DNA of 64,000 nucleotides, taken from NCBI GenBank assembly GCA_040357565.1, contig JBDODJ010000016.1. One strand, given 5' to 3'. Both the position numbers and the translations under genes were made by a program. Shown here piece after piece: positions 8,314 to 23,524 of the stretch (within the stretch, counting starts at the first letter, position 1; each line of letters opens with the position of its first letter). This DNA is from Cercozoa sp. M6MM. Lineage: Eukaryota; Protista; Endomyxa: Ascetosporea. The notes under the pieces were generated by a model. It had not been told where the DNA came from. It did not search any database and saw only the letters and a program-made list of their open reading frames with translations.

Positions 8314-10014
8314 ATGGGTGTTTGCGCTTCGCAAACTGCATTCAAAGAGAACAACGTACAGTAGGTTTGTTGCTTGTGCCCCTGACCGTGGTCAGCCTTT
8401 GATCTGCGCACAAAAAACACTGACAGGGTTTGGTGTGGTATAGCGTGAGGTAGCGGCCACGCGCACCGAGAAGCTACTGCTTCTTGGCACGAGTAATTTA
8501 CACCACTGCTTCCTCGACTTGTCCTCACAACAGTGCACTTATTTCGTTCTACCCCTGGTGGCAGGTGAATCAGGCAAGTCGACACTGTTGAAGCAGATGA
8601 TTTCCCTGTACGGCGAGGGTTTCTCCGATGAGGATCGCAGACAGTACGTGCATGTCATCTACGGCAACGCTATCGAGGTGCACCTCACCGTGGCAACTGC
8701 GCTGTGTTGATACAAGATAAGAACTTGGTCTGAGAAGAGCATGCTTGAGCTGCTGGCGCAGACCAAAAAGCTGCGCGATGAGTTGGGTATGTAATGCACA
8801 ACAAATATCGTGTGCCCCTCATTACCGTTATGTGTGCTGCCGGAATAGAACCTCAGGGCGAGAGCACAGTGGTGTCAGAGGCCAAGGCAACATTGCAAAA
8901 CGTTATCGCAGCCACCACCGCACAAGCTTTTGCCGACATTGATCAATCCGAGAAGGAAGCTGTATGAACATCATGCACCCTTTTGTGCTTGGGCGGAGTT
9001 GCACTTTGTCGATCCTTGCTGCCTTCAGGTAGCCAAAGCAATCCGCATACTCTGGGGTGACGAGGGCGTGCAAACGGTGTACGAGCACCGCAGTGAGTTT
9101 CAGCTGGTGGACTCGGCCAAGTACTACTTCGAGAACATGGATCGCATCGTGCAGCCCACCTATGTGCCCACCATGCAGGTAGTTCTACTGAACATTTTTG
9201 ACCCGCGTATCTATATCGAACTGCAGGATGTTCAGCGTGCGCGCACGCGTACGACAGGCTTTGGGGAAACACGGATGCACGCGAACAACACCGATTTCGT
9301 TTTGATCGACGTCGGCGGTCTGCGCAGCGAACGCAAGCGGTTTCCTTTCCATAATTCCACTTCACCTGTTGTATCTGGTTACTTTATCTTGCATGACAGT
9401 GGATCCACTGCTTTCAGAATGTTGCGACTGTGATTTTTGTGGCTGCTATCAGCGAGTATGACCAAATGCTGTTCGAGGATGAGAAAGCCAACAGACTACA
9501 TGAGGTAGTGGCTGTTTCGTCCCTCGAAGCATCTGCTCTATATGCAGCAGGCGTTGCATGTTTTCGACGAGGTCAGCAACTCGCGTTGGTTTCGCAACGC
9601 CACGTTGGTTCTGTTCCTCAACAAGCGCGACTTGTTCGAGGAGAAGATCAAGAGGATACCGCTCACGGTGTGCTTTCCCGAGTTCCCTGGTACGAATACG
9701 CCGACCATTTTTCTTTGTTTGTAAAGTATGCCACTTTCAGTTGTGTAACGGTATAAATGTATCCAGGACCACAACTTGAGTACAATCCGGCAGTGCAGTA
9801 CATACAGCAGCGATTTGAAGCACTGCACCAGGACAAGGTGTTGCTCATTTGTAGATTACGTTAGATTAAACCTTTCCTGAACTATTTGGTGTAGAGCAAG
9901 GCCATTTACACGCACGTAATGTGCGCGCTCGACACCGCCGATGCAGACTTGGCTCGGACATACCGTGCTTTTCTACCGGCATACCGCGAACTCTCCACTT
10001 GCCCGCTGCTCTAG
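8314..10014 (+). CDS. Heterotrimeric G-protein alpha subunit, atypical (predicted GTPase-deficient)
   Basis: MGVCAS N-terminus (myristoyl/palmitoyl-type); KLLLLG(TS)[11 protein letters not shown]; [28 protein letters not shown]; switch I RARTRTTG; [16 protein letters not shown]; [24 protein letters not shown]; [13 protein letters not shown]; [11 protein letters not shown]; 25-residue tail ending LSTCPLL* at 10014. Confidence 0.95.
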
Positions 10015-10176
10015 CTGGACGGTTCCGTCACGCTTAGTTGGGCGCCGCGTTTGGCTGAACTTACGTTAGTAGATCGTTCAGTGTTACAGACTGACTCACG
10101 TCAGAAACCCACGTTTCAATTTCTCAGCCTTAGGTTTTTCCGTTCATTTGGGGTTCGGTTGCTTATCATTACGCTG

Positions 10177-10293
10177 TAAGTACGGTTGACTATCGTTAAG
10201 CCCTTCTAAGTACGGTTGACTATCGTTAGGCCCTTCTAAGTACGGTTGACTATCGTTACGTCCTTCTAAGTACGGTTGACTATCGTTACGCCC
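10177..10293 (+). repeat. 30-bp tandem minisatellite, about 4 copies (TAAGTACGGTTGACTATCGTTANGYCCTTC)
   Basis: Units start at 10177, 10207, 10237 and 10267; head-to-tail with no spacers. Confidence 0.95.
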
Positions 10294-10894
10294 ACGTATG
10301 TTAATGTGAGATTGTCAATTTTAGTGAAGGCAACGATTAAGTAAGAATGTAAGGTCGTTTAATTTAGTGTTCGTTCGACGTCTCAAAAACCGAAAGATAA
10401 CCGAAGAGAGAAGGTTACCCCAAGGTAGGGCCGTCGTTACAGTTTAAAGTGTTGAGAGGCTTGTTCGTTGATAAACAAACGAAAACCCTCTTGCCTGCTC
10501 AAGATAGAGCAAGTCAGTTGCTTTGGTCACAGCAGCACCACAGGCGCATGGCTGGACCAACAGTACGGTCTTTTCGCGCCATGTACCCTCGTTCTATGAG
10601 GTAGCCAAGTGCGAGCTTGCCGAGCACACGTATGCTTGTGTCTTCCTGGAGCTTGCGTGTCGGTACCTGTGTGTCAACAAGCACGGTATCATTTGAGGTA
10701 CCTGGTATTGGAAAGAGGGCCTTTTTCCCTTCTTGCAGCAGTTTCGAGCTGCCACCAAACACAAGGTATGCCAAGCTAGGCAGCACTCAATTGCTAGGTT
10801 ACCAGCTCTCAACCTTAGCAAAACACTTCAATTCTAATTTGGCATGACTGATAGTTGTTCCACGCGGAGCGGGCGGTCAGCCGAGTAGGTTGTT

Positions 10895-11323
10895 TGTTAC
10901 GAAACGGTATTTTCCATCCGGCCGCCAGTCAGATCTGTCTGAGTTCTGGTGTTCCGCGCGGAAGAAAGCTATTCATTAAGCACTTTGAGAAGTGTGGTGT
11001 ATTGTGTTTGTCTGACTGAGCCCGAAAGAGCAAGACTTTGCTCCTTTCCTGAAAAGGCTCTCTACTCACCAGCACAGAGAGCCTTTCTTTTTCTCCTTAC
11101 GTCCCTCCTTCTCCTTCCTTCCTTCTTCTGACTGCCGGGCCTCTCTTCCTTCCCGACCAGCTACTTCCTGTACTTTGCCGACCCTATCTTGGGGTAACTA
11201 CATCACTACATCTACTGACTCAATTCTTCTCCGCATCGATTCCATTTGTTTCTTTAGCCTTTTTCCTGGCATAGTCCTCTTTTGCACTCCCAAAGCCTCA
11301 ATTTCTGAAAGGCTGCGGTAACA
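10895..11323 (-). mobile_element. Solo LTR family B, copy 1 (429 bp), nested in element A
   Basis: TGTTAC...GTAACA termini; 4-bp target-site duplication TGTT (10891-10894 / 11324-11327); reverse-complement homolog of 19767-20309; the empty site is preserved in A copy 2 (~19006-19022). Confidence 0.9.
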
Positions 11324-15217: not shown

Positions 15218-15312
<95 letters not shown>

Positions 15313-16012
15313 ATAGNNNNNNNNNNNNNNNNNNNNNNNNNNNNNNNNNNNNNNNNNNNNNNNNNNNNNNNNNNNNNNNNNNNNNNNNNNNNNNNNNNNN
15401 NNNNNNNNNNNNNNNNGGGGGGGGGGTACCGATCGATGCAGCAACAAAACGCAGTGCACTGTCGCTGAAGCCGTTTTGCAGGTAGTCCTCATCGTCACCA
15501 ACGTAGCTGAAAAATATAACGGTGCATCGCGTGTTTATACTAGACAAAGTGAAAGCTACACTCGGAACGGCTTGCGGTAGAACGGACTGTCCTCCTTCGG
15601 CACATTATCACCTGCGGTCACATAAAGAGGCTTAAAAAAAAACAAAATACGACGGACGGATGTTGTACCCGGCAGAATGAGGGAAGAACGAGACGTCTTC
15701 GCTGTAGTTTTTTGCGTGAGCGCAGAGAACACAAGGACCGCCACTTGCAGCAGTATGCTACGCAACTAAATCCTGACAAGGAAGAGGGCAGCAAGGTGGG
15801 TACCCAAGCACGTGAGCCACAGTCACGGTAAATTTGCGCGGACGGCGGAACCACATCCTCCAGCAGCACGACAGAAACTTGCCGCACGGTCCCTTGCCTG
15901 CATGGCACAGAACAAACAACGTCGTACTTTTCACCCACCAACTATTTGCAAATAGACCATTGTTGTCTGCATGAGATCGGCCACTCTGCTCTTCGCTAAA
16001 GCTAGTGCTCAT
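14211..16012 (-). CDS. Hypothetical multi-pass membrane protein with acidic Gly-rich C-terminal tail
   Basis: ATG 16012 (MSTSFSEEQSG...); hydrophobic segments (FTVTVAHVLG/VAVLVFSALT; ALRFVAASI/LSGFYFYLMI; VFYLAYLVTLTLSFLYAP); tail DNAFDQQDSPF...GGAYGI* at 14211. LSFLYAP weakly recalls the last helix of Wntless/TMEM181 proteins (unverified). One intron spans a 100-N gap. Confidence 0.6.
15220..15416. other. (AC)n microsatellite followed by a 100-N assembly gap (15317-15416)
   Basis: Visible directly. Smaller 10-N gaps inside (AC)n runs occur at ~31833, ~44106 and ~49282. Confidence 0.97.
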
Positions 16013-18995: not shown

Positions 18996-19558
18996 TGTTA
19001 CTGTAAACATCAAACAACCTACTTGGCTGACTACTTGCTCCGCGTGGAAGCAACTATCAGTCATGCCAAATAAGAATTGAAGTGTTTGCTAAGGTTGAGA
19101 GCTGGTAGCCAAACAATTGAGTGTAGCCTAGCCGTAGCTTGGCGAGCAGCTCGAAACTGCTGCAAGAATGGAAAAAGGCCCTCTTTCCAATACCAGGTAC
19201 CTCGAAGGATACCGTGCTTGTTGACCCAAAGCAACTGACTTGCTCTATCTTGAGCAGGCAAGAGGGTTTTCTTTTGTTTATCATCGAACAAGCCTCTCAC
19301 CACTTTCAACTGTAACGACGGCCCTACCTTGGGTAACCTTCTCTCTTCTGTTATCTTTCGGTTTATTGAGACGTCGAACGAACACGAATTTAAATCTTCA
19401 TCCGAGAAATAAGAGTAACACAGTGGCAGGTATACCGTCAGCAAGCCGCGGATCTCGTGCAAAACATCGTCTGAGGCCACTACCTCACGCCGAGCTTGCA
19501 GCAGACGTAGCCGAATCTGCCCAAGCCGACAAAGCCACTAAAGCTGACAATCTCACAG
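18996..19558. mobile_element. LTR-like element family A, copy 2 (inverted relative to copy 1), carrying a captured DNA-PKcs fragment
   Basis: Starts TGTTACTG at 18996, preceded by purine-rich AGAGGTAGAG (PPT-like); homologous to 10305-10894; 19392-19534 is a copy of 58956-59098; truncated on the right. Confidence 0.75.
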
Positions 19559-19616
19559 TTCGAGAGAGTGAGTTACCCCACCGGTCTAGTTGCGTCAAAG
19601 TACTAGTAGACGAAGT

Positions 19617-19689
19617 TATTACGGCACTGCGTTTCTCGTTGTCATCTGACTGCTCGTAAGCGCGGACGATCAAATCTGACCCAGTATGG
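19617..19689 (+). mobile_element. Fragment of LTR-like family C
   Basis: TATTACGGCACTGCGTTTCTC...CTCGTAAGCGCGGACGATCAAATCTGACCCAGTATGG matches the first ~90 bp of 29489-29731. May extend across LTR B toward ~20408. Confidence 0.65.
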
Positions 19690-19766
19690 TTAATAGCGAA
19701 GGATTTGTTTTGCTAGGTATCTCCGGCCTTACATCCTGAGGCTTCGCTTCTACTCGTACTTGCATT

Positions 19767-20309
19767 TGTTACCGCAGCCTTTCAGAAATTGAGGCTTTGG
19801 TAGTGCAAAAGAGTACTATGCCAGGAAAAAGACTAAAGAAAACAAATGGAATCGATGTGAAGAAGAATTGAGTCAGTAGACGTAGTCAGTTCAGAGGTAG
19901 TTACCCCAAGATAGGGTCGGCAAAGTACAGGAAGTAGACTGGTCGGGAAGGAAGAGAGGCCCGGTAGTCAGAAGAAGGAAGGAAGGAGAAGGAGGGACGT
20001 AAGGAGAATAAGAAAGGCTCTCTGTGCTGGGAAGACAGCAACAAGGGATTCCGTGAGAGTGCAAGGGCTGGAGCCTGGAGAGGTGCTTTACCTGGTGAGT
20101 AGAGAGCCTTTCAGGAAAGGAGCAAAATCTTGCTCTTTTGAGGTCAGTCTACCAAACACAGGGTAAGGAGGTTAGCAACACTCTCGGAGAGGTCAGGGTA
20201 CCAGACAAACACAATACACCACACTTCTCAAAGTACACAATAAATAGCTTTCTTCCACGCGGAGCACCAGAGATCTGACTGGCCGGATGGAAAATGCCGT
20301 TTCGTAACA
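19767..20309 (+). mobile_element. Solo LTR family B, copy 2 (543 bp)
   Basis: TGTTACCG...TTCGTAACA termini; 4-bp TSD CATT (19763-19766 / 20310-20313); AATAAA at 20239-20244 near the 3' end; homolog of 10895-11323 with two extra internal blocks. Confidence 0.9.
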
Positions 20310-20549: not shown

Positions 20550-21427
20550 TTACGTCAGAAGTAAGTTGAAGAGCGAGTCAGCGGAGCTGGAGGCGCCGGC
20601 CCTGTGTGATACCACGTAGATGCAAGTCCAACTCATTAAATTAGAGTTTACGGTGGGGTCGTGGCGGTTGTGGCGATACGTGATATGAGTGCGCGCGTCC
20701 AGTTTGTGGTCTAAATTTACACACCAAAAAGTTGCCTTCAATACACGCTTCGGTACTACAGAGCAGGGCACGTGTGCGATGGCAGTGGCGAGCGCGCTAG
20801 ATGTCACATACACACGCGCACTGAGCGAACAAAGAAACAAGACTGTGTGCTGGGTAAATTTACAAGGCGGCGGCGGTGGTCGGAAACGACTGGGCGAGGG
20901 CGGCGTGACATCACCGGACTAGACCGATAAGAAGATAAAGGTCTGCAGCATTTTCTGTACAATATCTGAAGGGTACGGCAGGACGACGTCCGCGTGGAGG
21001 GGGTCTTGGTAGCGATGACTAAACACACGTACAGTGCAACGTTAAAAGAATCGGTATCATTATACGTACCAAGATATCATCGATGGTTTCAACTGGTGCT
21101 GGCGGAACCGGCTTCTTCCTGGCCTATAAATCAATGACGAAAAGCTGGAGTATGGAAGGAAGGCAACACGAAAAGGCTACAGGAGGCGGCGGCACAGCAC
21201 GATGCTGCGTGCTGAGACTCACGCTGCGCTGCAGCAGCGGCGAAGGCGCGCGAGGCGACGGAGTGCCCAACGGTGTCGTTGCTGACGCTGTCGCTGACGA
21301 AGACTGCTCCAGCAACGAGAGTGCCTCGTCGATGTGTTGAAACACAAAGGTCACGGCGTCGCCTTCCTCCTTCATACCTTGCATCGACGCCAGCTGGTTG
21401 TCTGCACACACACAAACACACAAACAC

Positions 21428-21474
<47 letters not shown>

Positions 21475-23524
21475 CACACACACCATTAGCCTATACTCTT
21501 TCTGCCCACTCTATAAGAAAAGTACCAGAGGCCGACCGCAGCATGGCAGGCGCCAAACAAACACTGAGATTACGCGGCGCCATCTTGGTCGCCGCCAGAC
21601 ACTCTAGGTACCCAAGGACAAGTCAAATGAACAGGTCCAAAGGTCCAACAGATAGGTCAAGTGGACAAACTGCAAAATGGACTACCAGGTGACAGGAGAC
21701 ACTGCACGAACAGCAGCAGTTCGCGCAGCGTGGCCTTGTGCGTCGCACTTCGTGTCTGTCGCAACGCCTCGGCAAAACCGTCGAGTGTCTGCGAGAGAAG
21801 GTTCAACGTGCCAACAGTGCGAGATTAGAGTGAGTGAACCTGCTCAGTGGCCACGCGGCAGAAGGCATTGCGTGCGTCGAACGGCACCAGCGGCACTGGT
21901 AGGCCGCGCAGCCACTCCTTCAACAAGGCGGCGCACGTGTGCGGCGACGTCAATTTCGCGTCGCTTTCGATCGCATAGTCACCTTCTGCCAGCTGCGCAC
22001 CGCGAAGAGATACAATCTTAAGATAAAGACAGAGGGAAAGCAACCTTGCGTCGCAGGTACTTGAGGTCGGAAGCACCGGCCGAGAGTCGAAAGATACCCT
22101 CGGTGTGATGTCCGTCGAGGTGCTTGATTCCGGAAATCAAACGTGTCACCAGCAGCGGCACATACGGCACGTCAGGTCGGCTGTTCTCTCTGTCGTCAGA
22201 AGAAGTGACATTGGTATCACAAGGAGGTAACACGCAAGGTAAAAGGTACGGCAGTGACACGACGTCATCCAATGATGACCGAAACAGTGCACTCGACAGT
22301 TCCGGAGGTAGACCCCAGTCTGCCTCGCCTTCCTGTCAAACAGACTTAGGAGGACCATTCCACAGCAAAGTATTCGACGCACCTCGAGTGCGGCAGCAGC
22401 AGCGGCGTGTGACTTCTGCTGCTGCGTCAGAAAGAGCGCCACTCGCTTGCGCAAAGCTACAAAATTAGACAGGTACAACTCCGATGTACTGGCGTACAAC
22501 AGAAAAAAGAAAGATAGAGAGGTGATACTCAAATTGTACTCGTCGCGCAGCTCCGTCACAGCCGTGATGAACTCTTTTTGCGCAGCCTCGTAGGCGTCCA
22601 GTGCCTAGACAACCAAGTTACTTGTACTGAGGAAGTAGGCCAAGTACAGTACCTGGCGTTTCTCATACGCAAGTGCAACTTTTGCAACGGCATCGTCGTA
22701 CTCTGCGCGTGACCAATACATAGTGCACAGTCACAAATGCAGTCTAGCCATCGACGGAGTACGCAGGTGCGTCGTGTCCAACTTGCGTCGGAGTGCCTTG
22801 GAACGCTTGATAGATTGCTCGTACATTGACAGCGGCACTAGCACCTACAGCACACACAAAGTCTAAAAAGGAGCGAGCAAAGACAAAAGGCGCACCTCGT
22901 TTTGGAACTGTTCAAGCAACTCGTTGATCGCCGTGTCGGTCACAGTGCGCATGCCAGCTGCAGGAGAACGAGGGCCGGGGTAAATAGAGGGGCACACACA
23001 AGATGAGTGTACACTCGGTAGCATTCAACGGTGGCGGCAACGACGAACTGTTAAACACATATTAGCTGCACGGAGAAACTGCTGTAAAGAGAATCGGTAC
23101 AACATGCTGCAGAGGTCCTGGCCAACTTTCAACGTTCGACGCAGCTGCGCCTCAAACGCCTTGGCTGCAGTGTCGTATACATGTGTATTATAAGAAACAA
23201 CCATATCTTCAGTACCCTTGGCCAGAACGCCATCAAAGTTCTCCACCGCCGCTTCAAGCACAGTCTGCCAAAAGTCTTATACACGACACGACACGAATAC
23301 CTCAGGATAGAGGCGAGGCACCTTCAATTGCGATATCTCGGGTGAGTCTTGACTGCCTTCGCGGCGCCCGGTCTTCTGCAACGCCTGTTGCCGCCAGGCT
23401 TTGCTCTGAAGCACACCATGAGGGAAACAATAATACTTCACAGCTATCAAAACGGTCCGAGCCCGGCAGCAGCTTGACCACATCGACTCACCTTAGCTTT
23501 GAACGAGGCCTTGAACGAGCTCAT
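20550..23524 (-). CDS. BAR-like coiled coil + RhoGAP domain protein with Pro-rich tail (3' end approximate)
   Basis: MSSFKASFKAK|SKAWRQQALQKTGRREGSQD; BAR-like helices (LLEQFQNEVLVPLSMYEQSIKRSKALRRKLDTT, ALDAYEAAQKEFITAV); GAP motifs VPLLVTRLI..IKHLDGHHTEGIFRLSA (Arg finger), CAALLKEWLRGLPVPLVP, TKMAPRNLSVCLAPAML; several PPPP motifs. Confidence 0.85.

Follow-up and report, generated by a model that had tools for sequence, protein, structure and literature searches.

Heterotrimeric G-protein alpha subunits (G-alphas) in which Leu replaces the catalytic Gln of switch II are known as engineered or oncogenic variants (G-alpha-i1 Q204L, G-alpha-s Q227L and G-alpha-q Q209L), and a side chain replaces the second Gly of the P-loop in G-alpha-i1 G42V and in the slow-hydrolysing G-alpha-z. 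The G42V substitution is reported to misplace Q204 and to strongly reduce the hydrolysis of guanosine triphosphate (GTP) (10.1101/795088). Plant XLG2 is a natural G-alpha homolog without the catalytic Gln or the canonical P-loop residues and serves as a nearly nucleotide-free decoy (10.1101/795088), the XLGs acting independently of nucleotide by sequestering partners (10.1101/795088; review PMC8584482). In kappaB-Ras1, Leu65 replaces the catalytic Gln61, and kappaB-Ras still hydrolyses GTP while binding nucleotide weakly (PMC12314375); loss of the catalytic Gln thus need not abolish hydrolysis, and a Gln-to-Leu change is not to be equated with a "locked" state. Here, we describe an 11-exon G-alpha gene at positions 8314–10014, plus strand, of a 64,000-nucleotide stretch of contig JBDODJ010000016.1 (the window; all coordinates refer to it, and all features of the gene lie on its plus strand) from Cercozoa sp. 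strain M6MM. The gene carries natural substitutions at the equivalents of both Ras G12 and Ras Q61, Gly to Ser in the P-loop and Gln to Leu in switch II, and canonical splicing of the gene as assembled yields a frameshifted mRNA and a truncated product. With modest confidence, we lean towards an atypical G-alpha, long retained and only recently disabled, which has left a young pseudogene or a null allele.

Strain M6MM is Lemnamoeba sinaloensis, a marine amoeba of the Rhizaria (Apofilosa). Its genome is available as a short-read draft of 23.6 Mb in 2235 contigs (PMC11069148, PMC13746701), based on 10X/Illumina reads and annotated by funannotate with training on RNA reads (PMC11069148). The public model for the locus, MHM6MM_001209 (protein MES1908236.1; P0001), is a hypothetical protein of 220 amino acids to which PF00503 is assigned; it comprises exons 1–7 and a frameshifted tail. 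In a profile scan of the genome, the locus matched positions 24–285 of PF00503, the G-alpha profile, and exon-by-exon hmmscan searches against the same profile gave 38, 53, 30, 53 and 56 bits, the inserted helical domain included. Nearest to it in the protein libraries is another gene of strain M6MM, the paralog MHM6MM_004476 (P0151, 369 amino acids; contig C213, locus L017), hereafter the sister, with 73% amino acid identity over 318 aligned residues. The two genes share the exon–intron layout, including the intron in the P-loop and the one after switch II, as well as the MGxCAS start, the helical domain and NKRD, and the window locus appears to be an unprocessed, DNA-level duplicate of the sister. 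Unlike the window gene, the sister has GAGESGKS, DVGGQ, TCATDT, an alpha5 helix ending in GLL, a full N-terminal helix and an intact frame.

The preliminary description of the window had read both substitutions from the letters, and both were recovered. The codon after DVGG is CTG (9320–9322), giving DVGGL, where the sister has CAG and other paralogs CAG or CAA. Exon 2 (8444–8492; 9 nucleotides shorter than in the sister) contains the Thr codon ACG at 8489–8491 and ends with the first base of a Ser codon, which exon 3 (8565–8677) completes before continuing with ESGKST, the remainder of the P-loop and alpha1. The sole canonical splicing of intron 2 (8493–8564; GT..AG, 72 nucleotides, phase 1, within the P-loop) joins GGC ACG A|GT GAA into G-T-S-E-S-G-K-S, against GGA GCA G|GT in the sister: the general P-loop motif GxxxxGK[ST] is kept, and the Ala-Gly of the canonical GAGESGKS has become Thr-Ser. 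G-alpha-z has Thr-Ser at the same two positions. The position and phase of intron 2 are common to two paralogs (L004 and the sister's locus), and the public model carries both the Leu and the same P-loop junction. Retention of intron 2, which is in frame and free of stops, gives a look-alike of the canonical beta1 and P-loop when read through; we attribute this to the acceptor gcag|GT, which mimics Ala-Gly codons, as the sister shows the same effect (IVAGESGKS).

The other motifs, listed earlier as intact, are in part so. GKS is present, as are the catalytic Arg and Mg-binding Thr of switch I in exon 7 (RARTRTTG, aligned in the exon translations with RTRVRTTG of the sister), NKRD (the G4 motif) in exon 9 and C-A-x-D-T in exon 11; G5, however, reads MCALDT and not TCATDT, keeping Cys-Ala and losing both Thr, and nothing alpha5-like follows it. 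Both G4 and G5 lie 3' of the frameshift described below. Radical changes concentrate around the nucleotide pocket, with the P-loop Thr-Ser, TTGIVE to TTGFGE, Gln to Leu and TCAT to MCAL, and many of the remaining replacements are conservative (V/I, L/V, E/Q). Every other G-alpha locus of the genome whose fetched exon spans the site reads DVGGQ, at least 15 paralogs in all, and the Leu is therefore unique to the window copy within the genome.

The reading frame, taken to be open in the preliminary description, proved not to be so under canonical splicing. Exon 7 (9227–9339), which encodes switch I and switch II, is one base shorter than its counterpart, ending AAG CGG|tttcc in the window and AAG AAG|gtttac in the sister. 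At the lesion site (9338–9341; CGG|TT), the sole GT, at 9340–9341, stands one base early for the frame, and the sole canonical pair for intron 7, GT at 9340 and AG at 9399, removes 60 nucleotides where an in-frame join needs 59. Exon 8 (9400–9504), which begins WIHCFQNV, is conserved and scores 53 bits in Pfam, is thereby read out of frame and a stop is reached 10 codons later, at the TGA of 9431–9433 that ends the public model. The resulting product of 220 amino acids is without NKxD and the guanine loop. Provided that the assembly is correct, the locus carries the disabling lesions of a pseudogene, with one base lost at the end of exon 7, a premature TGA and the loss of alpha5. The case also calls for caution, as "activating" residues read from exons can mislead unless every splice junction is checked.

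An in-frame junction of exons 7 and 8 requires TT..AG or GT..CA. In four paralogs, the sister among them, the intron found here is GT..AG and of phase 0. Enumeration of all GT and GC donors near the end of exon 7 with AG acceptors in early exon 8 found no combination that restores the frame while keeping WIHCF. Introns of L. sinaloensis are 99.5% GT/AG, 0.2% GC/AG and 0.3% other (PMC13746701). We considered a U12-type intron 7, the donor GTTTCCTTT resembling the U12 consensus, and rejected it: a genome search found no U12 or U6atac small nuclear RNA, a weak negative since the control searches also gave no matches, and the paralog introns at the site are ordinary.

Both termini of the encoded protein differ from those of typical G-alphas. 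Exon 1 (8314–8355) retains the Gly2/Cys4 lipidation motif and is 24 nucleotides shorter than exon 1 of the sister, and relative to the sister and the other paralogs the N-terminal helix lacks 11 residues. At the other end, homology to the sister and to G-alphas generally stops at CALDT (9936), with none beyond it in any frame. Searches of the whole window by tblastn with three different G-alpha C-termini found no alpha5-like coding sequence, nucleotide alignment with the last exons of the sister gave no alpha5 match above shuffled controls, and Pfam gave no match for exon 11. Nor could a frameshifted alpha5 be upheld, as the frameshift-aware protein–DNA alignment scored 14, shuffled controls averaging 17 +/- 3, and a likeness to RE.L....LL* at the very end was not significant. 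In place of alpha5 stands a tail (9937–10014) of 25 codons and a TAG, unique in the genome and amphipathic in pattern.

Truncation of the 3' end by a transposon was likewise rejected, since a dispersed repeat starts only at about 10296–10305 and the sequence from 9880 to 10295 is unique in the genome. This repeat family (approximately 10296–11323), of which the genome holds at least 40 copies, 75–94% identical, starts approximately 285 bp 3' of the gene and is directly preceded by four tandem 30-nucleotide units at 10177–10296; a second copy, inverted, lies approximately 8.7 kb away at 19085–20279.

The gene bears marks of long-term selection on its reading frame. Against the sister, the synonymous rate (dS) is 0.71 and the nonsynonymous rate (dN) 0.154, and the ratio dN/dS of 0.22 is similar on the two sides of the frameshift, being 0.225 for exons 1–7 and 0.207 for exons 8–11a, the homologous part of exon 11. 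There is no stop in 333 codons, a result found in only 5.5% of trials when approximately 85 neutral substitutions, the number needed to explain the excess divergence of the window copy, were simulated. At three other places the window copy is shorter than the sister, by 24, 9 and 12 nucleotides, each time in frame, and nine of the 10 introns keep GT..AG in the correct phase, leaving 19 of 20 splice dinucleotides intact. The locus does not have the profile of neutral evolution expected of a pseudogene, namely dN/dS near 1 with stops and frameshifts, and with this ratio, no stops and in-frame indels, any pseudogene state must be recent. At the same time, where at least 80% of nine outgroup paralogs agree on a residue, the window copy has changed 13 times and the sister once; with the conservation threshold set to 60%, the counts are 25 and five. 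The overall pattern is that of a paralog apparently kept as a protein while the constraint of the GTPase cycle was relaxed, and not that of long neutral decay.

In a phmmer search of the whole library, exon 6 matched only its own public model (100% identity), the next matches being at most 64% identical; the switch region, queried by a word-based search, brought up no relative, and the protein libraries, 5.8 billion proteins in all, held neither an ortholog nor a close relative bearing the Leu. The window gene is one of at least 16 G-alpha loci in the 23.6-Mb genome, a lineage-specific expansion. Weaker G-alpha matches on six further contigs (C286, C102, C292, C608, C1040 and C958) may be more divergent or fragmentary copies.

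Several observations weigh against a real and recent disabling lesion. The missing G sits in a GG(G) run, where an assembly or haplotype artefact is conceivable. The exons 3' of the lesion carry no further damage, from which it follows that the frameshift is either very recent or not real; an intact gene would fit the lack of damage equally well. The tail of 25 codons matches a normal alpha5 tail in length, and only 2.5% of shuffles reach an amphipathic moment as high; it may therefore serve as a functional substitute for alpha5, although amphipathicity is just a hint. GC content at third codon positions is 0.70, compared with 0.83 in the sister, and within the paralog range of 0.56–0.92, and polarised synonymous and nonsynonymous changes show elevations of similar size (27/12 and 38/15), suggesting that the excess may partly reflect lost codon bias and not functional change. 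One rival explanation, the GTP-locked subunit of the preliminary description, is an intact, expressed gene, in which the missing base is an artefact of assembly or allele or intron 7 is a rare non-canonical intron (TT..AG or GT..CA), an explanation we find doubtful while granting it an appreciable chance. Such a gene would encode a lipid-anchored protein of approximately 333 amino acids, predicted to bind GTP and hardly hydrolyse it on account of the Leu and the P-loop Ser, and its coupling to receptors and G-beta-gamma would be lost through the short N-terminal helix and the rewritten C-terminal one. In its favour, the exons after the lesion are as constrained as those before it, with intact splice sites and no stops; a small fraction of the species' introns is annotated with other dinucleotides; MGxCxS, GKS, the switch I Arg and Thr, DxxG, NKxD and the Ala of the guanine loop are retained; the tail has the pattern and length just described; and a natural Leu at the Gln position has a precedent in kappaB-Ras1. 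Against it, one-base indel and homopolymer errors are improbable in short-read Illumina/10X data with good k-mer agreement (PMC13746701, PMC11069148), and the spliceosome would be expected to choose the usable GT one base upstream. The annotation trained on RNA calls the truncated model, no minor-spliceosome RNAs were found (with the weakness of that negative noted above), the unrecognisable alpha5 and altered TCAT make tight GTP binding doubtful, and not one ortholog or Leu-bearing close relative turned up. The stronger claim that the frameshift is unreal or bypassed and that a full-length, lipid-anchored G-alpha was selected for the loss of hydrolysis, of receptor coupling and of part of the G-beta-gamma-binding helix, with alpha5 replaced by a new amphipathic helix, would make the protein an abundance-controlled counterpart of Rnd, RhoH and kappaB-Ras that arose independently of the plant XLGs; we think it unlikely. 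If such a protein is made, the locus would be a rare natural experiment in which a G-alpha has been selectively kept with two changes that are oncogenic in humans and with the receptor-coupling helix lost, and it would show G-alpha function without a GTPase cycle outside plants.

A long-dead pseudogene, in which everything that changed, the Leu and the Ser included, is neutral decay without functional meaning, would account for the frameshift, the loss of alpha5 and the short N-terminal helix, and is in keeping with the 13:1 relative rate at conserved sites, a third-position GC content below that of the sister and a transposon-like repeat family close downstream. We nevertheless regard it as improbable, given a dN/dS far from 1, the rarity of a stop-free frame at the inferred excess divergence, the three in-frame indels out of three, the nearly complete set of splice dinucleotides and the many conservative replacements, with the radical ones clustered at the nucleotide pocket. 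Most improbable of all is that the 220-amino-acid product is itself functional, as a nucleotide-free scaffold or decoy made of the lipid-anchored N-terminal helix, the P-loop, the helical domain and a fragment of switch I/II. Canonical splicing predicts this product and the public annotation reports it; yet half of the Ras-like fold is absent from it, with beta4–beta6, NKxD and the guanine loop all missing, and from what is generally known of G-alpha structure a stable fold is unlikely, and the downstream exons would not then have remained conserved and splice-competent.

The explanation that we favour, a long-kept atypical G-alpha with a recent lesion, would have the following course. After duplication, the window copy evolved several times faster than the sister at conserved sites, losing the catalytic Gln, the Ala-Gly of the P-loop, TCATDT, 11 N-terminal residues and a recognisable alpha5, while its reading frame and splice sites probably stayed under selection during most of the time since. 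The protein would have been a lipid-anchored, atypical G-alpha whose GTPase activity was probably slow or absent and which no longer coupled to receptors or, probably, to G-beta-gamma, and may have acted through its abundance, as a constitutive effector-binding signal or as a decoy, and not by cycling. The loss of one base after switch II would then be real and recent. The strain has been in culture since 2000, that is, for more than 20 years (PMC13746701), and a null allele may have become fixed during that time. As both substitutions arose in a lineage whose frame was under selection, a naturally GTPase-impaired G-alpha probably once existed at the locus. The GTP-locked subunit of the preliminary description is a different matter. 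Its two substitutions are real, but NKxD and CAxDT cannot be encoded with canonical splicing, alpha5 has been replaced by unrelated sequence and Thr of the guanine loop changed; with alpha5, which holds the guanine-binding loop, unrecognisable and TCAT altered, tight GTP binding would be doubtful even in a full-length protein. If the gene is broken, which seems the likelier case, it is an ordinary instance of an expanded family (at least 16 G-alpha genes in 24 Mb of genome) that is losing one of its diverged members.

Exons 4 (8738–8786) and 5 (8849–8961) encode the helical domain, the latter being 12 nucleotides shorter than in the sister and in frame, and exon 6 (9029–9178; 53 bits in Pfam) the helical domain and linker 2. 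Exon 9 (9548–9689; 56 bits), which contains NKRD, starts at a NAGNAG tandem acceptor (cag|cag, 9546–9551), where use of the alternative acceptor at 9551 changes the product by one Gln. Exon 10 lies at 9767–9837, and the homologous part of exon 11 (9895–9936) encodes the G5 loop with its Thr-to-Met and Thr-to-Leu changes. Some intron turnover is seen at this end, as the window intron before SKAIY (9838–9894) is absent in the sister (2333–2588 of its locus, compared with 9767–10014 of the window), and alpha5 of the sister is interrupted by an intron with no counterpart in the window gene. Elsewhere in the window, long (AC)n microsatellites stand at 15221–15338 and 21405–21486, one of them adjoining a run of N; AC:GT repeats have been reported to fragment the M6MM draft assembly, and an (AC)n tract next to a run of N fits this.

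Among the known systems, the engineered and oncogenic G-alphas have the same Leu at the catalytic Gln as the window gene, and G-alpha-i1 G42V and G-alpha-z likewise have a side chain in place of the second P-loop Gly; in these proteins the gene is intact and alpha5, the guanine loop and the N-terminal helix are retained, whereas in the window gene all three are altered and the frame is broken. The kappaB-Ras1/2, Rnd and RhoH proteins are alike in carrying natural substitutions at the G12 or Q61 equivalents and in being regulated otherwise than by cycling, but belong to a different branch of the GTPase superfamily. The XLGs, natural G-alpha homologs as well, form an old family conserved in plants, carry a large N-terminal extension and retain G-beta-gamma binding, while the window gene is a duplicate confined to one species, and its G-beta-gamma-binding helix is shortened. 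Predicted G-alphas with DVGGL occur sporadically in public data, in Pilobolus umbonatus (P0254), Lobaria immixta (P0276) and the fish Parambassis ranga (P0231), and no studies of them were found in the literature searched. The Pilobolus protein shares the P-loop Ser of the window gene (GASESGKS) and has Glu at the position of the catalytic Arg. A conserved natural family with the Gln-to-Leu change was considered and dismissed, since a search from this protein gave Gln-bearing relatives and one other singleton. All three come from unrelated lineages, are singletons among relatives with Gln and, unlike the window gene, have kept TCATDT and alpha5. The window gene adds a member to a known class, that of G-alphas which are atypical or in decay, and is not a new kind of system.

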